56,848 nucleotides of DNA from Cyanophora paradoxa CCMP329 (Eukaryota > Plantae > Glaucophyta). Position numbers and translations under genes: made by a program. The notes below the pieces were generated by a model. The model ran no database searches, was not told the DNA's origin, and saw nothing but the letters and a program-made list of their open reading frames with translations. The DNA lies in NCBI GenBank assembly GCA_004431415.1, contig QPMI01000316.1:1-56848 (forward strand), in the 5' to 3' direction. Shown one piece after another: positions 453 to 16,189 of this stretch. Positions within the stretch are counted from its first letter, which is position 1. Each line of letters begins with the position of its first letter.

Positions 453-2701
453 ATGGATGCCTCAAAGGGCGATGACCGGACCGGCATGCATGACCATCTG
501 AATGCCGGCGACCTGGACGTCGTGTCCTTCTTCGGAAGTGATATCATGCCCGGCATTGCGCTGGACGCTGGCCATCCGATGGACATCCCATCTCCGTCGT
601 TTCTTCCTTCCATCGGAATCTCGGACGCTTTCAACAACCCGATCTTGAGCAGCTTCGGGTCTTTCAGCGATGGCGGCTACCTTGGGCAGGGGGCAGATGG
701 AAACCTCTGCATTGGAGGGCAGCACGCTGGCTCATCGGAGCTTGCAGCCGCAGCGCTGACGGACAGCGCGCTTCTGGGCGCAACGCACATGGGGTCGCTG
801 CCCGCCTCGTCGGCGGGAGCGCCCGCTCAAAGTTCCGATGAGGAGGATCTCGCAAAGTTGATGGTGCGTTTTTGTCGTTTGCAGGGGCCTCTTTGAATCG
901 GCACGCGTCTGATTCCCTCGCAGAGGGAGATCAAGCGCGCGCGACGTGCGGAGCCAGGCGCTGAGACGGAGCCCGTACAGCTGCACAACGATATGTCGGG
1001 CCCCTCTTTCTCCTTGGAGAAGCAGCTTCGCGTTCAGATGGAGCATCACAATCAGATCAATCTCGCCCAGCAGATTCTGCAGCTTCAGCAGCAACACCAG
1101 TGTGGATCTCAGCGATCGCCTCAAAACTCCAAAGCCGACAGTAGCATCGCAGCGCCGACTTCCGCTCTTGGCTTCTCGCAAGACTTGGAGAGCGGTGCTC
1201 CGCAATCCGAGGCGAAGGCTGCGCCGGAGTCGACGGCAAGTGTCATGTCGATGGTGCGCAACTCTATTCCGTATCTAGACCTTTTCTCGCAATGATTCCC
1301 CTTCTTTCAGCCCCAAGTCGACATCAAGAAAGAGTCGTTTGCCATGCAGCCGCCAGCCGCTCCGGCAGCTCTGAGCGGAGCGGGAGCGCGCAAGCCTTCA
1401 GTCTCGGGGAATCTGTCCATCACCGTTCCGTCGGGGCAGACATCGGCCGCGTTGCCATCGCCGAGCACCCCCGCCGCGCCTGCCACTCCGAGCGCCTCTT
1501 CTGCTTCGCTTCAACCCAAGCGCCGCTTGGTCTGGACACCAGAGCTGCACCAGCGCTTCGTTGCAGCGGTCAATATTCTCGGGGTTCACTGTGCGCTTCT
1601 GTCTACTACTTCACTCCCGAAGAATTCTTTTATGTCCTTTTCGCTGGATTGATGTCTCGTGCCCACAGGTGCTGCTCCGAAGGCTATTCTCCAGCTTATG
1701 AACATCGATGGCCTTACTGCTGAGCATGTCAAGAGCCACTTGCAGGTGCGCTCACGATTTCATTTCGCCCCCTTTCTCTTCAGCTCTAACACTCTTCTCA
1801 GAAATACCGAATGAACCTGAAGAAGAACGGGGGCCAGGACACCCTTTTCGACGGTGCGGAATTTAGTTCTGGCGCGGACACGAAGCCCAGCGCGGCGCTC
1901 AGCGAAGCATCGTCGTCCCCGGCCCCCAAGGAAGCCGCAGCCTCCAGCAGCGCAGTAGCCTCCAGTAGCGCAGCTGTTTCCAGCAGCACGGCGGCCTCCA
2001 GCAGCGCATCTGTTGAGAAATCGCCGGCAGAGATTGCGCGAGCACCTGCCACACGTTCTGGGCGGAGCGCGTCTCCAGATGGCTCGGCGACGCGGGATGG
2101 TTCTGACGCTTCGTCGAGTGCTAGGCGCACCACAGCCTCGCAGAGCCAGGAGCTCCAGCGCCATCTTAAGATGCAGGAGCGAACTCTTCAGCTCCAGATG
2201 CAGCTGCAAATGCAAATGCATTCTCAGCTTGCTCTGCAGCGCCAGCTTCAGGTTAGCATTTCGCAGCAGAAGGAGTTGCTGCAGAAGCAGATGCGGGAGC
2301 AACAGGTCAGCATTGTACACATCTTGATTTCCGCTTGCATCTCTGACTCCTCAACAGGAGCAGCTGCGCTTGCTCATGCAGGACCAGGAGGCTGCAGAGA
2401 AGAACAGCGAGCTTTCTTCCCCTGAAAGAGCAGAGCGCCGTGGCCAGGCTGAACGTTTGAAGGAGCTTCACATGGTGCTTGCAAAGTAAGTCTTTGATGA
2501 ACGTATGAGAGCATTTACACTTGCCCTGAAGACGATGGCAGGCGGATTGCCGAGCAGCAGCAGGAGGTAGCCAAGCAAGAGGACCAATTGAAGGCGCTTC
2601 TGGAGATTAGCGAAAAGAACGTTACACAGCTGGCAAAGCCGGATGTGTTCGCACTTCCCCAGCCATCGGTTGCTCGGAGCTCCTCCCCTGCCGTGCAATA
2701 G
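453..2701 (+). CDS. PHR1/PSR1-like GARP (SHAQKYF-class MYB) plus coiled-coil transcription factor, multi-exon
   Basis: Spliced translation gives KRRLVWTPELHQRFVAAVNILGVH|CAAPKAILQLMNIDGLTAEHVKSHLQ|KYRMNLKK (GARP domain). TLQLQMQLQMQMHSQLALQRQLQVSISQQ (~2183-2270) aligns to the MYB-CC LHEQLE coiled coil. Stop TAG at 2699-2701. Confidence 0.88.
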
Positions 2702-4299: not shown

Positions 4300-6127
4300 G
4301 AGTCCACGTGAACTGTCGAATCCACGTGAACTGTGGCGTTCAACGGTTCTCGATGGTCAGGATCCCTGACCGCCGCCTAGGCTAGTCGAATTCACGTGAA
4401 CTGCGGCGTTTTATTCTCGAAATTTAAAGCAGCAGTGCAAACGATCGCGACGGCAGCCGAGCGGCGAGTCGAATCCACGTGAACTGTGGCGTTCTCGAAA
4501 AGCAGAAAAGCGAGGGCTAGGGGGGGGGGGGGGGTACTTGGCCTGAGTAAGAGCTGTACTTGGCATGAGTAAGAGCTGAGTAAGAGCAGCGTTCGAGCGC
4601 TGTTGAAGGTGCGACCCGCTCATGATCAATGACCTGCGACGACTGCGAGAGTGGGGTACGCCTATCACGAGGGAGTCGCGGCCACGATATCGATAATGGG
4701 GTCGCAGCCGCGACGAACCTCGCGAGGGGTACCCGCGGAGGCACTTTCCACTTGGCACTGTGACGCCTTTTGTCGCTTGCATCCCGGGTGTGCGTTCGGG
4801 CGCGGCGCCTTGTTGCACCGCGTTCATCACGGCTCTCTTCGCACCGCCGCCTCTGCGGTCCCCCGGGATTCTCTCCCTGACTCTCCCCCCTGATTCTCCG
4901 CCCCGGCGCACCGCCGCGCCTCGCGCGCGTTGCGACATTTTTATCTCTTCGGGTCACCCGCGCCGCCCGTGACACCGGCGCGCGGCGCGAGCGGGCGCGG
5001 GGATGGGGCGCGGCCGCGGGCTCTGCCCCGTCTGTCGGCGCGCCCACGCGGCCGTCGACATGATCGGATGCGACAGGTGTGACGCGTGGGTGCACTACAG
5101 GTGCGCACGCCGCGCCCGCCGCTTGGCGTCTGTTCTGTTCTGCTCCTTCTGGTCCGCCCGTGTGCACGTGCTCTAATTTTCCGACTGTTCCGGCGCCCCC
5201 CCGCGCAGGTGCGCCGGCGTCCGCGACGACGCGCACGCGGATTCAATCGATTATTTGTGTCCGGCGTGCGCCGCCGGCGCGCGGCCCGCTCAAGTGTGCA
5301 ATCTCCCGCCCCGGTCGCCCGTGCCTTGCTTACCGCCCGGCCCAGCGCGCCGAGGCCGCGCAGCCGCCCAACGCCCCCGTGAGAAAACTCTAGTCTGGCA
5401 AAATTTACGTGAATTCGGCTCTCGGACTCCGCACCGACCCGCGCCCCCCGTGAGAGTTCACGTGAAGCTAGAGAGTAGAGAGAGCTGAAAGCTAGAAATC
5501 ACGTGAATTCGGCTCTCGGACTTAGCCCCGCGAGCGTTCACGTGGGGCTAGAGATCTAGATCTAGAGCCCAAAGCTAGAAATCTCACGTAATTGGAGTTC
5601 ACGTGAATTCGCCTCTCGAACTCAGCTCCGCCCCGCAGGAACATCTTCCTGCGGTTGATCTCCGGCGTGGACGCGGGGCGCCGGCTGAAGCCCCTCCGAT
5701 TAGCCGCCCTGGGCCTGGCGTCGCCGACGGCGGCTGAGTACGCCGCCGCCGTGCGCACGGCCGCCGCGGCTTATCACGACCCGGCCGGCACCCCCGACCC
5801 GACCGGCGCCGCCACGTGCACCCGGCCGGTCGCCTCCGTCGTCTGTCAGTAGGGGGACCGCTCACCCCCCGTCAGCGGGCTCTGCTGCGAAAAGCGTTTA
5901 CGCGACACCCGCGGCTTAGCGCCTTGTAGGGACAGCGCCCCCCCTGGGGACCCAGTAGCTGCGCGCGACAAGTAGACCCGCGCTGCGGCTGCCCCTGTTT
6001 CCGTTGAGCCGACCGCTATTCAGCCAGGCCTCTGGCCGCAGTTCACGTGAATTCGACAAATAGACCCGCGCTGCGGCTGCCCCTGTTCAACGCGTACGGT
6101 TTCCGTTGAGCCGCAGTTCACGTGAAT
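4300..6127. mobile_element. Putative non-autonomous DNA-transposon-like element with nested inverted repeats and many CACGTG/TTCACGTGAA copies
   Basis: Perfect 23-bp inverted repeat GTCGAATTCACGTGAACTGCGGC at 4385-4407 and 6035-6057. Outer imperfect pair at ~4316-4346 and ~6103-6127. Internal direct repeats at ~5374-5522 and 5973-5998/6061-6087. No transposase or target-site duplication recognised. Confidence 0.5.
5003..5290 (+). pseudogene. PHD-finger coding fragment split by one intron (5101-5208), inside the repeat element
   Basis: Spliced translation LCPVCRRAHAAVDMIGCDRCDAWVHYR|CAGVRDDAHADSIDYLCPAC is a complete C4-H-C3 PHD pattern. The intron is GT..AG with a CTAAT branch-like motif. 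In-frame TGA upstream at 4970. Expression unknown. Confidence 0.65.
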
Positions 6128-6346
6128 CAAGAATCACCCTGGCTTGATTCCAGGGGCCCAGCCAGACGTGCAGGCTCAACCGCGCAGACTCTCGCGTGCT
6201 GGTTCCTCGGTTTCCTCGGGCTCGCAAGCTTAAGCAGGTCGCCAGCTAAGCAGGAGTAGGGGGGGACAAGACAGGAGTACGTGAAACATTGAGCGCACGC
6301 CGACAGTACTAGTCTCACATGTACACAGACCTGTAGCTAGCAATCT

Positions 6347-8576
6347 ATGGACGCGTTTCTAACACCGGCTACGGCGATGGCCGTCCGGAGCCTCCCCGTC
6401 GCACGGGTTGCCGTCGCACAGGCGCGGCTCGTGCGGCCTGCTCAGCTCAGTACGCGCCGGGCGCATCGTCCAGCCAGGCTCGCTTCTCGTCAGTCGCTCT
6501 TCCACAGCTCAGCCGGTCCAGCTCTCCTGCGGCCAGCTGCCGTTTTCTCGACCCCGAATATTCAGCCAGCTCTGGACCGGGGCACCGTCCTCCTGTCGCC
6601 GCCGTCCTCAGAGCTCAAGGCGCTCTGTGCGAGCCAGGCTGCACTAATCTGCCGAGCGATGGAGGCGGTGAGCAGCGCGGTCTACCTGGCACAGCAGTCG
6701 CGGAAGGGCTCGCTGGAGTTTGTGCAAGTGGCGAGCTTCCCCGACGACGATCTCCTCGCGCTGCCGAAGACGCTGCTGCCCACGAGCAGGTACTGCAGCG
6801 TTCCCTGCGGCTAGGCGCGCGCGCCGACGAGGGCGGCAGGATCCTCTCCGAATACCCGTTCGTGTCCTTCTCCGATCCGGACGCTTCCTTCGGGGTCGAG
6901 GGGATACGCATCGCCCCGCTGCTACACGCCGGCATTCTTCTCGGTGGGGCTGTTCCTGTCGGGCCCCCCTCGCTCCTCCGCGCTCTGCCGACGCGGCTGC
7001 CGCAGGCCTGCTCGTGGTGGCGCGCTCGAGCAGCCAGTGGCGGGCGGGGGACGAGCAGCAGCTGCAGGCCGCCGCCGAGACCCTAGCCATCGCCTGCGCT
7101 CTCGACCAGAAATCGCAGTGGCAGGAGCGCATCCGCTCCGAGCAGAACATGCTGATGGGCCAGTTCACCTCCGTGCTCTCCTCCATCCTCCAGCAGGCCC
7201 GCCGCCCGCCGGCGCCCCCGCTCGATGGCCTGCATCTGACGCCGGCCGCAGGCGAGGAGCCCGCTCACGGCCGTGCGGACGTTCGGCCAGATCCTGAAGA
7301 AGCGGGTGCGCGGCAAGGGGCGAGGGCGGGGTGCCCCCGGGGCGGCACGGGGCGACGGGGCGGGGCGGTGCAGCTGGGGGCGGGGGACCCGTCGCGGGAC
7401 CTGGCGGGGGACATCCTCGTGCAGACGGACCGTCTCCAGGAGCTCCTCCTCCGCCTCGACCAGGCCCGCCTCGCCCCGCACCGCCCCCGCCCCTTCCTCA
7501 CCGCCCCGCCCCGCCCCGCCCCGCAGGCCCTCGAATCCGCCTCCGATGAGGGCCCCACCCCCGCCCCCGCCCCCTCCCCGGCGCCGCAGCGCCTCCTTTC
7601 GCCGGCGCGGGGCTCCGACGCCTCCGCACCGCGGCTCCTCCCCGCCGCCGAGCCCCGCCGCCTCGAAATCCTCGAGTGAGGCCCCGCGCCCCGCCCCGCC
7701 CCCGCGCTGGCGCCGCAGCCGGCTCACCTCCCCGCAGCGTCCTCCGCCCCGTCCTCTCCTCGGTGCAGCCGGTGGCGGACACGCGGCGGCTCGCCCTAAC
7801 GGCCCTCTTCGACACCGAGCTGCCCCCGTCCGCGTGCGCCCGTCCGCCGCCCCCGCCCGCGCCCCGCGCGCCGCCCTCACCGCCACCCCAGGCCGACCCC
7901 ACCGGCCTCCGCGAGGCGAGCTCGCGCGCGAGCGGGGAGGCGGCGGCGGGCTGAGCGTGGGGGCAGGTGGTGGGCAGCGTGCTGGACAACGCCCTCAAGT
8001 ACACCCCGCCCGGCGGCTCCGTCCTCCTCCAGGCCCGCCCCGCCCGCCCCCGCCCGCCCCCGCGCCGCCCCGCCGAGGGGGCGGGCAGGTGAGGGCGGCC
8101 GGGGACCCCGGCGGGAGCGGGCGGCGCGGCGTGCTCTGCGTCGTCGCGGACGACGGGCCGGGCCTCCCCGACGACGACGAGGCGGCGGCGCCGGCCCGCC
8201 CCCTCTGCCCCGGCCCCGCCGCGCGGAGACGGCTGCGGGGGCGGCGGGCGGGCAGGGGCTCGGTCTCGCGGTCGCGAGGGAGCTCGTGGAGCTCATGGAG
8301 GGGCGCATCGACCTCCGCAGCCCCTGCCCCGACCACCTCCACCCCGCAACCGCCGCCGCTGGCGCCGCGCCTGCAGCCGCTCCCGCCGAGACAGCGTCCG
8401 ATGGCGAGGAGGAAGGCGCCGGCGACGCGCCCGCCGACCCCGGCGCCGCCCGCCCGCGGGGCCCGGGCGCCGGCGGAGACGCGTCGAGGTTCCCACTAGA
8501 CTCGGCCGCCTCCGCACGGGGCACCGCCGTCTCGATCTGGCTCCCCGAGTGGGTGGCTCCGAAAGATCCGATATAG
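6347..8576 (+). CDS. CSK: Chloroplast sensor kinase (CSK/Hik2-like): transit peptide, GAF, HisKA-like, HATPase
   Basis: MDAFL.. Ala/Arg/Ser-rich presequence. SSELKALCASQAALI..AVYL matches the Hik2 N-terminal GAF. Also AAETLAIACALDQKSQW, ILQQ|ARSPLTAVRTFGQILKKR, N box LDNALKYT, G1 VADDGPGL, G2 GLGLAVARELVELMEGRI and GTAVSIWLP. Confidence 0.85.
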
Positions 8577-11596: not shown

Positions 11597-12109
11597 CCAG
11601 CGCGCGCGGTAGCGCTGGTGGCGCTATAGCTAGGCCTAGGCGCTGCTTAAGCGAGCTTCTGCGCTAGCTACAGCGCTAGTTATAGCTATAGATCTTGATC
11701 AGCATGTTTGATCTCAAAGTTCGTCAGCATTATCGATACTATGATAGGACGTACAATCTTCAGCGCTAGCCCCAAAGCAATCCACAATAATCCTGTATCC
11801 CCGCGGAATCCGCAGGCGCATCTACTCAGCAGTGTACGACGGTAGAGTTCTCTGCAGGCCGCTAGGTTCGCTTCTGGTTCGCTTCACAGCTAGCTTGTTA
11901 GAGCCCGGCAGCGCGCGGTCTGGGCTGGTTCCTGGTCGTCGGTTCAGCAGACCCCTGTCCGGCGACACAGCCGCGTGTAGCACGTCGCTGCTTCACGCTG
12001 ATATCTTGCGAGTAAAGGAGTGCACCGTCACTCGTGCCACCCGACGTGCTTCCCCGCTCTTCTTTCGCTCCAGCGCCATCCCGCTGCGGTCTGAGCACCG
12101 CGCCATATA

Positions 12110-14403
12110 ATGAAGGTAAATCGACACGCGACTCTTTCTTTGCCCAACGAGAGACCGATCTGATCGATGCGCGCCGCAGTTCGGTAAGCTCCTCGAGAGC
12201 TCCCTGGCAAACAGGTGCTACCGCGAGCACTGCCTCGACTACAAGCGTGCGCCATGTTTCCTTAGCTAGTTCACATTTGGATGCAGTGCTGAAGCAGTGA
12301 CCGCAGAATTGAAGAAGCACATCAAAGACATCGGATGCGGGGTCTCGCACGACGCGAGTGGCGTCTTCTGCAGATGTCTTGAAGCTCAGCTAGAGGTCGT
12401 TAACGGTACGGCATCACTGCACGCGCTGGGAGTGTGAGAAGCGACTGAATCTTTTCTGAATCCTACGTAGACCACTACTTCTCGCGCGAGGAGGACGCCG
12501 TCATTCGCTTGAAGATGCTCGAGGACGAAGTGCAGCGTCTGGTACATTTCTTTCTTGACCACATGCTTCACGCTTGACGCTTGGCGCTGACCGTCCTTTC
12601 TGTGCAGAACTCTGGGAAGAACGTGGACGTTGCGGCTTTGAGGAAATCGCTTGTTGACTTTCACGGGGAGCTCGTGAGTCTCGAGGAGTATGCTGCGCTG
12701 AATTTCACTGGATTGCTCAAGATCATGAAGAAGGTTTGTTCTTGTTCCTCCAGGGGCACCTCCTGCCGCGTTATCTTACTTGTGTATCGCGTCCAGTACA
12801 TGAAGAAGATTGGACATAACCAGTCCCCAACCAATGTACAGCAGCGGTATGCTCTTTGAAGCGCGGGGGATACCTCTTCGAGTCGCTCTGACGTCGGCGC
12901 TCAGCTTCCTGGAGCAGCCGTTTTACACGAACACCACGCTTCCCCAGATGATCTCTAAAATTCATTCATATTTCCACATGCTGGATTTGCATCCGGCCCC
13001 GCCATCGTGCCCCCTCACGGATGCGGCCGCTGCCGGCCCTGCCCCCACACAAAGCGAGGGTAAGATGGCTTCGCGCGCTTTTTTTTGTGCACCGCAGAGC
13101 AGTGCGGCAGGCGGGGAGAGCGCGTCGACGGAGGGGCGCTTCTCGCTGGACGACCTGGTCGGGGCGGCCGAGTTCGTTGGCCTGAGCTCCTCCAAGTGCT
13201 TCCGGAACGTGCGGCTGCTGCAGCTGCTGCTCGAGAAGATCAACGCGGCGGACGTGCTCCGCCTGATCGCCCAGGCCGACGCCAACGACGCCGCCGCCTC
13301 CCACTCGGCGCCCGCCCCCGACGCCGCCTCGCGCATCCGCATCACGCATCTCGCACGCACCCCGGGCCTTGCCCTCGTGCGTGTCGAGTCGCCCATTGCG
13401 ACCAGGTCGGTGTCTTGTGACGAATCGCCGCAGAGCGTCTGGGAGTTACCGCCGAAGGGCACGCTCCCCCTGCACGACCGCGGCGACACCATCGCTGTCA
13501 CGCGCGTGCTGCGCGGCTCCTGCAAGTGCGCTTCTGTCCCCTCGATCGCTGGCGGCCCGCGCTGACCCGGGCCCCTCGCCCAGGCTGCTCTCCTACGACT
13601 GGGAGCAGGCGCAGGCCAGCGGCTCCTCCGAGGAGGAGGCGGCCGATAACGCGTCGGCAGGGCTCGCCGGCCCCTCCATGTGCCCCGCCGCAAAGCGCCA
13701 GCGCCTCGAGAGCACTGCAGAGAGCTCGAGCGGCGACGGCGCCTGCGCCGTCCCCTGCGCGGCCGGTGCGCTTGCGGCTTCGCGTCCCTCGCGCCGGCGT
13801 GCCTCGCCGACACGCTCCGCAGAGGGGCGGCTGGCGGCGCGCCAGTGCCACGCGCTGCTGACGCCCGAGCGGCCGTCGTGCGTCTCGTGGCCGACCAAGG
13901 GCGGCAACCTGCGCTCGCTGACGGCGTCGGGCGCCGGCGCGTGCACGGTGGTGGACCTGATCGTGCCGGTGCGGCGCGAGGGGGCCGGCCAGGGCGCCGC
14001 CGTCATCCACCGGCCCTTCACCCTCCTCGACTTCCACCTCCCCTGCTCCGACGCCGTCCGCCAGGAGCGCCCCCTCTCCGACGCCACCTCCCCCGCCGAG
14101 CCCGTCCCCGCCCTCTCCTCCCGCGCTTCCCCCACCAACGCCCGCCCCGCCGACCGCACCCTCGCCGGCGCCGGCGTCGCCCCGGGGGCCGCCGAGTCGC
14201 GCGAGCCGTGCGAGGCGCTGGGGCGGAGCCGCGTGCTGCTGCACCAGCGGGCCTGCCCGGCGGCGCTCGCGGCCTGCATCGTCGAGCGCTACGCGGAGGT
14301 CTTCCCCAGCGCCGCCCCCGAGCCCGAGCAGGCCGAGCAGGCCCAGCAGGCCGAAGAGCCCGCCGTCTCTGCCGCCGCCCCTGAACCAGCCCCCGCAGCG
14401 TAG
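12110..14403 (+). CDS. SPX domain fused to a degenerate PCO/ADO-family (thiol dioxygenase) cupin
   Basis: Spliced SPX part: MK|FGKLLE..CLDYK|QLKKHIK..LRKSLVDFHGELVSLEEYAALNFTGLLKIMKK|YMKK..FLEQPFY. The same open frame continues to LLEKINAADV..WELPPKGTLPLHDRGDTIAVTRVLRGSCK, then after an intron LLSYDW..WPTKGGNLRSLTA..CTVVDLIVP (PCO/ADO motifs). Confidence 0.82.
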
Positions 14404-14725
14404 ATTCCTAGCTAGCTCTTTTCACTTCCGATTTTCAAGCCGACTCTGTGTCGCACAACTTGGCTACCTTGGCAGCTGTCTGTGTCGGGCCGCCGGACTT
14501 CAAAATCTCCAAGGCTCGCAGCAGCCTACTTATTGTCGCCCGATGAGCTGCTTGTTAACAGCTAGATCAAATGCAGAGAATCCCCTGGGGGCATAAAACA
14601 AATGTATACACTGTAGTACACGTAGGACGCAAACAACGGTGCCGGAACTATGTCGAGTCAGTCGCCGTTCTTGGACGCTTGGGTTGCGGGCCATCGCCGG
14701 AGTCTGAAGGGACGGCACGCTGTCA

Positions 14726-15330
14726 TCAAGACGCTGTGAAGCGGAAGGACGCATGCGTCGGGCACCTTGGATCGCCTTCGCCATCCTGTCGACAGCGCTG
14801 GGACTAACTGCCCCATGCACCTGCGCCTAAAGTCAGCCGAGTGCTCAGCAGCGCCGCGGAACGGAGCCGAAAGCACCGCGCGGGCCATGTCGATCCACTC
14901 TAGTGCTCGCGGCGTCGGGTCCGACTCATTTGGCTCGATATCGTGGGTGTACCAGCTGATAGATGATAAGCGGGCGGCCACGCGCACGTCGCTGCGCTCT
15001 CTTTCAGTTCCCCACCCGCAAGCAAGGCGGCGGCGGCGGGAAGCACCTGCACGAGGCGGGCGCCTCGCTCTGCGAGCTTCCTTCGCTTCCTTCACTCCTC
15101 CTCACGTCGAGCAGCACGCCGGCGTACGAGCTGGGGAGTTGAAGCTGGCGGCCGCGAAGCTGGCGACCCCGGAACTCCGCGTCGATTATCCCCGAAGCGC
15201 CTTCGCCCTGCTCCAGCAGGAAAAACGTGCTGACGCTTGCCGGACCGTCGTGCTTTATGATGCAGGGCACACGGTGCGCCCGAACGCACGGAAGCGGGTC
15301 CGTGCCCCGCGAGATTTGGAGCTCGGCCAT
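14726..15330 (-). CDS. RNASEH2C: Ribonuclease H2 subunit C (3' end approximate)
   Basis: HRVPCIIKHDGPASVSTFF..AEFRGRQLRG..LPSSYAGVLL and WYTHDIEP..RALEWIDMARA|VH match the RNase H2C family pattern. Confidence 0.8.
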
Positions 15331-16189
15331 TCAAGATCTGGCAACTTTAACGCGCAGCTAGCTATATAAAGAGCTCGAGATCGTGGTGGGGCTGGCGCCG
15401 CGGCCTGGCACTGCGTTCAAAAAAACAACTCCCCGTCTCGGATCCGAACTCGGAAACCCAGCTCCGGGCCTTCCACCCCGAGATCAAATTAAATTAAACT
15501 TGCAAGTTGATATTGGCGCGCGCGCGCCGATATCGATCGCGAGTCGATCGGCGCGCGCATATGCATGCATATGCGCACGTGTTTTTTACGTATACGTACG
15601 TGCACCGCACGTGACTCATGATCAGTGACTAGCGGGGCCCGGCGCGCGCTGCAGCGCCGCGGCGCCGCGGCGCGCGCGCGCGCCCCGCCGGGCCGGCTGC
15701 ATGGCCGGGCCCCGGGCCGCGGCCCGGCGGGCCGCGCCCGCGCGCCGGCCGCGGGCGCCGGCGCCGGCCGCCGGACGGCGGCGCGCCTGGCACGGCCGCG
15801 GCCCGGTGGCGGGCGCGGCTCCGCGGCGCGAGCGCCGGCGCCCGGCCCCGGCTGGCCGCGGGGCCCGCGCGCGGGCCGCCGGGCGCCGGCCGCGGCTGGA
15901 CCCCCGGGCCCTTGTCGCACTACTTTAGGTACTGCCATCTTTGAAGCTGTGATCATGAATAAGAACTCGGAAGAACTTCGGAAGAAGTTTGCAATTGAAG
16001 CTCAAACTTTGAAAGCGCTTCAAATTCAATTCAATAAAAATGGTTGAGTTCATATAAAGATACCGTTCGCACATCAATTACAGGAGAAATACGAGGCTCT
16101 ACACCTAAGCCCTACAACTGAAACGCTGCTGAAAGGATCGAAAAAAACAGTGCGAATAAGATCCGGAGGCGACAAGTCGCCGAGTAGTC

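Follow-up and report, generated by a model that had tools for sequence, protein, structure and literature searches.

A single gene of the glaucophyte Cyanophora paradoxa encodes an SPX domain of the SPX1 type followed by a cupin domain that descends from a PCO/ADO thiol dioxygenase, and in this cupin two of the three iron-binding residues have been lost. This SPX-pseudo-PCO architecture is real and conserved, and it is apparently undescribed. The gene was found in a stretch of 56,848 nucleotides, hereafter called the window, where it occupies positions 12110..14403 of the forward strand. It is spliced, with 11 exons, and codes for 564 amino acids. We propose, with a confidence slightly better than even, that the protein senses inositol pyrophosphates in the manner of SPX1, represses PHR and carries a non-catalytic, PCO-derived interaction domain.

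The product of the RNA-supported gene model is identical to the EukProt protein tig00001336_g8224.t1 of C. paradoxa, referred to as P0001, which was the one protein returned when the genomic open reading frame of exons 10-11 was used as query. In each of three RNA-like runs, which come from two studies, a single contig of about 2.8 kb leads from the SPX domain into the cupin with all ten introns, and the ten GT..AG joints are the same in all three runs. Both domains are thus on one spliced contig, in agreement with the fusion proposed from a sequence-only reading of the locus. The spliced contig extends from position 11801 through the stop codon. The RNA status of these runs is a guess made by the search tool, and it is supported by the splice joints, none of which was found in the DNA-like run X15. 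Once the ten introns are removed, a script check gives a frame of 564 codons with zero internal stops. The sequence-only reading had connected the two domains through one frame at 12905-13530. The reading frame is indeed unbroken there after splicing, but in the genomic DNA it is interrupted by intron 7 (13060-13110, 51 nt) and by the next intron (13377-13433, 57 nt), both of them in frame. The GGNLR motif is encoded in exon 11, two introns beyond this stretch. The locus is GC-rich and its introns are short. Third-position GC is mostly 0.62-0.69 in SPX exons 3, 5, 6 and 7, against 0.92-0.96 in the cupin exons. Run X15 has an extra T at window position 13078, in the poly-T of intron 7, which leaves the coding frame unaffected. 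Downstream, the RNA contig continues into a convergent gene for RNase H2 subunit C (window ~14500-15330, minus strand; Pfam PF08615, E 8.5e-13). CT..AC introns of that gene, near 14704-14766 and 14817-14876, are on the same contig, so that the 3' ends of the two genes overlap or abut. The features of the locus are listed in Table 1.

Table 1 Features of the SPX-pseudo-PCO gene and of the MYB-CC gene in the window (residue numbers refer to the Cyanophora protein).
Feature	Position in window	Strand	Basis
Putative PHR/PSR-type MYB-CC gene (approximate limits)	453..2700; MYB ~1503-1830, coiled coil 2135-2305	+	PDB matches
5' untranslated part (start is the contig limit)	11801..12109	+	same spliced contig; no upstream ATG
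Exons 1-6 of SPX-pseudo-PCO gene	12110-12115, 12180-12246, 12307-12405, 12471-12541, 12608-12733, 12797-12846	+	splice joints, frame check
Exons 7-11 of SPX-pseudo-PCO gene	12905-13059, 13111-13376, 13434-13525, 13584-13765, 13823-14403	+	splice joints, frame check
SPX domain, SPX1-type, aa 1-165, exons 1-7	12110..12980	+	Pfam, PDB match, alignment
Ala/Pro/Ser-rich linker, aa 166-199, low confidence, split by intron 7	12981..13133	+	RNA joints, model
Cupin first half, aa 200-318, three helices and first strands	13134..13605	+	Pfam, model, alignment
His294-Asp295-Arg296, replacing AtPCO4 His98-Asn99-His100	13473..13481	+	alignment
Disordered acidic insert within cupin, aa 319-377	13606..13839	+	model, alignment
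Basic motif PAAKRQRL in insert, monopartite-NLS-like	13684..13707	+	motif; NLS role inferred
Cupin second half, aa 378-421	13840..13971	+	alignment, model
Arg402, replacing AtPCO4 His164	13912-13914	+	alignment
Asp416, equivalent of AtPCO4 Asp176	13954-13956	+	alignment
Ala/Pro/Glu-rich tail, aa 422-564, low confidence	13972..14400	+	model

Both domains of P0001 exceed their Pfam cut-offs, SPX with 60.3 bits (cut-off 27.8) and PCO_ADO with 57.9 bits (cut-off 27), in agreement with the original assignment. The closest solved structure to the N-terminal domain is that of rice SPX1 (E 1e-24). Residues Y25, K29, K147 and K151 of rice SPX1, which bind InsP6 (PMC8639918), align with Y23, K27, K119 and K123 of the Cyanophora protein, and the segments MKFGK, DYKQLKK and KIMKKYMK, from which retention of the ligand-binding residues had been claimed, are all present. 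Ten Lys/Tyr positions of the SPX domain are invariant in all 17 aligned members of the fusion family. The basic InsP surface thus looks intact, judging by its residues. The interface to PHR is conserved in part. As read off alignments, the rice SPX1 residues V125, V132, E135, E92 and K99 are kept in Cyanophora and E89, E100, R161 and Y180 are not.

The cupin domain is recognizable as a PCO relative in sequence and in fold. The AlphaFold model of the Cyanophora protein is weak (mean pLDDT 49.5, three sequences), but it has two confidently modelled parts, which match structures of SPX domains and of thiol dioxygenases. Foldseek aligned this poor model to PCO4/ADO with an E-value of about 2e-6, and its VIA Z score against PCO/ADO is about 12, tied with CDO. 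A far better model, of the red alga Bangiopsis (see below), reaches a Z of about 17, and the structural resemblance called for by the initial assignment was found in both. The two full models have pTM values of 0.39 and 0.46 even though single domains were modelled well, and fixed packing between the SPX domain and the cupin is accordingly not predicted. In the Cyanophora protein, the final strands of the PCO fold were not found within aa 422-564, a tail of low complexity. Residues Trp394-Pro395 are invariant across the fusion family, and AtPCO2/4/5 have Tyr-Pro at this place. The position of AtPCO4 Tyr182 is lost in the Cyanophora cupin.

His98, His100 and His164 of AtPCO4 have been described as catalytically essential (PMC10092093). 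The Cyanophora cupin keeps one of these three iron ligands, as His294, and the other two are Arg296 and Arg402. The Arg substitutions had been noticed from the motifs PLHDRG and GGNLRS; they are confirmed in the DNA-like and RNA-like runs and recur in both related proteins from Gloeochaete. Neither RNA editing nor a faulty assembly accounts for the Arg codons, as the DNA-like and RNA-like runs agree with no differing letters. While the loss of the iron-site residues is read directly, the absence of iron itself is what the sequence suggests. With the His triad missing, use of O2 by the domain is not to be expected. Asp176 of PCO, which holds the substrate amine (PMC11773813), has a counterpart in Asp416. 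All three glaucophyte proteins have a K(K/R)x(K/R) motif in the cupin insert, and this basic motif resembles a nuclear localisation signal, which it may be.

Two full-length relatives of P0001, with E-values of about 1e-54, came out of an exhaustive search that covered 1.84 billion representatives. These two proteins, P0002 and P0003, both come from one transcriptome sample of Gloeochaete wittrockiana, and the glaucophyte sampling consists of two genera. In both, SPX and PCO_ADO score above the Pfam cut-offs. At 37-43% identity, both Gloeochaete sequences keep the His-Asp-Arg triplet, GGNLR and the Asp. Only 41 of the 195 ungapped columns are invariant among the three, and the pocket residues His294, Arg296, Arg402 and Asp416 belong to them. 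The codons for Arg402 are CGC, CGC and AGG. Since the Arg residues have been kept at this level of identity with differing codons, they are old and probably selected in glaucophytes. In a metagenome scan for further glaucophyte members, none of 21 SPX loci had a cupin in open frame; several of these loci are intron-rich, which makes this a weak absence.

The same architecture is found in red algae, where at least 13 proteins annotated as SPX-only have a PCO-type cupin with none of the three iron His. An iterative profile was seeded with four SPX tails from outside the glaucophytes and run over the 147 remaining matches listed (best 150 of 416). It gathered 14 tails first and the three glaucophyte domains afterwards. 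The carriers include Porphyridium purpureum, P. aerugineum, Bangiopsis, Chondrus crispus and Gracilariopsis chorda, and the remaining ones group in the red-algal clade of the SPX tree. With a profile built of red-algal tails only, AtPCO5, PCO2 and PCO4 top all PDB sequences (E 4e-6 to 1e-5), and a language-model search with one red-algal tail returned PCO_ADO clusters at 0.90. A second Porphyridium gene that was held out of all profiles matches the tail profile with an E-value of 1e-12. The Bangiopsis model (pLDDT 81) aligned to ADO with a Z of 17.5 and 2.9 Å over 169 residues, and to PCO4 with a Z of 17.2, CDO being within one unit. The modelled fold alone cannot separate PCO from CDO for the red-algal domain, but its sequence does. 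Most red-algal cupins fall below the Pfam cut-off, and these proteins are therefore annotated as SPX-only. His is absent from the three ligand columns in every aligned red-algal member. The Arg residues of the pocket are kept only in glaucophytes and these positions vary freely among red algae. Mean column identity across the fusion family is about 20%, and Gly, Trp and Pro of the cupin do not vary among the 17 aligned proteins, red-algal and glaucophyte. At least four groups of red algae and two genera of glaucophytes have retained the whole cupin fold. The red-algal clade also has two short SPX proteins, P0026 and P0063, which are without most of the cupin and may be fragments or true truncations. 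Porphyridium purpureum has two SPX-cupin genes arranged tail to tail (locus L026, 4001-5533 on the plus strand and 5649-7130 on the minus strand), two genes away from a gene of the inositol monophosphatase family (L026, 557-2359). In Neopyropia, a gene named SPX3, which may belong to the fusion family, is 5.2-fold up under P deficiency (PMC11641120).

No cupin was found in SPX proteins of the green lineage among the best 150 of 416 matches. The conserved tail of green SPX1 was considered as a cupin remnant and rejected, with a profile-profile probability below 1%, like that of reversed controls. Exact patterns, which have low sensitivity, retrieved no bacterial or archaeal relative of the Arg-type cupin from 185,579 genomes. 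When the tail alignment was used for a profile word search, just two members came back, both already known, which is uninformative. In trees of the SPX domain, in which green groups were labelled by their tail motif and partial sequences were excluded, glaucophyte, red, chlorophyte-type and streptophyte-type domains form separate groups. The glaucophyte, red and streptophyte-type groups are well supported, the base is poorly resolved and the outgroup is unreliable. A tree of 37 rows places glaucophytes and red algae on one side of a branch with weak support (78/46), and one of 70 rows leaves the base open. That both groups have Trp-Pro and that both have lost the metal site speaks for one fusion event, which most likely preceded the divergence of red algae and glaucophytes. 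The support for this single origin is weak. The alignments suggest that the pocket has decayed in part in glaucophytes, where His-Asp-Arg, Arg and Asp are kept, and fully in red algae. As a plant phosphate sensor, the two-domain form may be older than the stand-alone one. The fusion may have been present in the ancestor of all Archaeplastida and been lost in greens, or it may be a novelty of red algae plus glaucophytes. A stronger version, that SPX-pseudo-PCO sensed phosphate in the archaeplastid ancestor (or was a novelty uniting the red algae with the glaucophytes) with the pocket as a second input or output site for an anion or an N-terminal peptide, seems to us improbable; if it were true of the ancestor, the stand-alone SPX1 of green plants would be a truncated descendant.

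Among known proteins, the stand-alone (class 1) SPX proteins, such as rice SPX1/SPX2 and Arabidopsis SPX1-4, are the best match to the N-terminal domain in sequence and structure. The fusion resembles them in keeping the InsP-binding residues and part of the PHR interface and in having no membrane segment. Class 1 is defined by the absence of a further domain, whereas in the fusion a PCO_ADO domain follows; this PCO-fold domain has 200-400 residues, and green proteins have in its place a short tail without detectable homology to the cupin. The cupin shares with Arabidopsis PCO1-5 and animal ADO (PF07847) the fold and the order of its motifs (helices, P-x-H strand, YDW, GGN, Asp176 position), and its nearest relatives in the PDB by sequence are AtPCO2/4/5. 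It differs from them in its broken iron site (one of three His in glaucophytes, none in red algae), in the lost Tyr182 position, in its long insert and in its SPX partner, the known PCO/ADO members being stand-alone enzymes. Like the known multi-domain SPX classes, the fusion has an N-terminal SPX sensor and an effector domain, but unlike the classes described (PMC8717665, PMC11528361) its partner is a dead dioxygenase. The red-algal proteins named SPX domain-containing protein 3/4 (P. purpureum KAA8494547, G. chorda PXF44630, C. crispus CDF40820) share the two-domain architecture and differ from the Cyanophora protein in a cupin below the Pfam cut-off and in full loss of the pocket residues. 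We found no description of an SPX and PCO_ADO fusion in the open literature, and precomputed data show both Pfam domains on P0001. In those parts of an SPX survey covering Chondrus, Galdieria and Cyanidioschyzon that were searched, text and supplements, PCO, cupin and dioxygenase are not mentioned. The initial view that this pairing is unlisted thus stands for the open literature searched, but the occurrence of the architecture in red algae had been missed.

With the fusion, the SPX sensor family gains a class that is missing from the surveys cited above, and red-algal proteins taken for SPX-only, including those of cultivated seaweeds, become two-domain proteins. It also represents a branch of pseudoenzymes among the PCO/ADO oxygen sensors, seen in two stages of decay, of which we found no earlier description in the literature searched. 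As a rare fusion present in red algae and glaucophytes, it bears on the origin of plant SPX1-PHR signalling. The branching order of the three primary-plastid lineages is unsettled, and the fusion will bear on it once a cupin tree with outgroups exists. The Porphyridium and Cyanophora proteins make the fusion testable in vitro.

In our proposal, the fusion protein would correspond in glaucophytes to the SPX1-type sensors of plants, with a two-domain architecture that red algae share. Under ample phosphate, inositol pyrophosphate would bind the basic surface of the SPX domain, as residue conservation suggests, and the loaded protein would bind and inhibit a PHR/PSR-type MYB-CC factor in the nucleus, by analogy with plant SPX1 and PHR. 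The cupin, whose fold is kept, would act as a folded, flexibly tethered and non-catalytic module, most likely a surface for protein interaction or self-association that adds a partner or tunes the availability of the SPX domain. Such a module accounts most simply for a fold that persists while its pocket decays, and we regard it as somewhat probable. The changes in several residues of the rice SPX1-PHR interface count against the PHR-repressor part of the proposal. A CC-bearing PHR is doubtful in red algae (10.1101/2022.04.15.488190), so the partner may be a different one there.

Other readings of the cupin were weighed against this one. The glaucophyte pocket might be a second binding site, as the sequence-only reading had suggested, for an anion such as phosphate or an inositol phosphate or for an oxidised, anionic N-terminal Cys peptide. 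The protein would then integrate phosphate status with a second signal, possibly the Cys N-degron pathway. The invariance of its four residues, the Arg402 codons, which point to selection for Arg, and the retained Asp of the substrate amine speak for such a site, but the case comes from three sequences of two genera with shared ancestry, red-algal members do not keep the Arg, Tyr182 is lost, and a change from His to Arg takes one transition and lies within motif cores conserved for folding. We consider this reading unlikely. A link to the O2/N-degron pathway, raised in the sequence-only reading, is unsupported beyond ancestry: the triad is gone, Tyr182 is lost and the Arg pair is confined to glaucophytes. 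Outside vascular plants no Cys-degron substrate is known, and in glaucophytes and red algae ATE/PRT6 were not found in every case (PMC10092093).

Alternatively, the cupin could be a structural passenger that binds neither a partner nor a ligand and is retained for the stability of the protein or the control of its turnover; green plants would have lost it while keeping the core function. Its low mean identity, the flexible linker and the green SPX1-type proteins without a cupin, among the matches listed above, fit this idea. An idle domain should be truncated more often than the two short and perhaps fragmentary proteins indicate, and the whole fold, with its invariant Gly, Trp and Pro, has lasted very long in red algae and glaucophytes; the passenger reading is a little less likely still. 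Residual metal binding in glaucophytes through His294, Asp416 and water, with non-canonical chemistry under SPX control, would explain why one His and a second-sphere Asp are invariant there. Two cationic Arg side chains occupy the ligand positions, the three His are described as essential for catalysis and red algae keep none of them, which leaves this reading very improbable. Finally, there is next to no chance that a gene model joined two neighbouring genes artificially. The RNA evidence does consist of contigs, and the same contig runs into a convergent gene, but every joint between the domains is a plus-strand GT..AG in frame. In other species the same fusion is encoded in independently obtained transcriptomes and in genomic genes without introns, and these orthologues already refute an artefact. 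The non-catalytic interaction module remains our preferred reading.

A candidate partner of the fusion protein, by analogy with plants, is encoded about 10 kb upstream by the putative MYB-CC gene, whose MYB is of the GARP type. Its best PDB matches are OsPHR2 for the MYB domain and AtPHR1 for the coiled coil (E 5e-5), and its Pfam Myb_CC score is below the cut-off, in a Gln-rich segment. In the coiled coil, the His and Arg of KHR are kept and the K325 position is Met. A preprint reports no CC-bearing PSR factor in Cyanophora (10.1101/2022.04.15.488190), and the coiled-coil gene described here differs from that report. In a eukaryote, a proximity of 10 kb is no evidence of partnership. From the alignments, the E135-R356 salt-bridge pair of rice is kept in both Cyanophora proteins and the R161-E363 pair is lost in both. 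This matched keeping and loss is a weak hint of SPX-PHR pairing. No P1BS element was found near the SPX promoter, between 9695 and 15557, and plant-type feedback induction is therefore unsupported. Paired P1BS-like GCATATGC sites are present at window positions 15557, 15567, 51065 and 51092. After the MYB-CC gene, at 4300-4620, the window has short repeats of TCCACGTGAACTG, with a G-box-like core, and of TGAGTAAGAGCTG. A gene at 6720-7679 on the plus strand, between the MYB-CC and SPX genes, has a weak match to the GAF domain (E 0.03).
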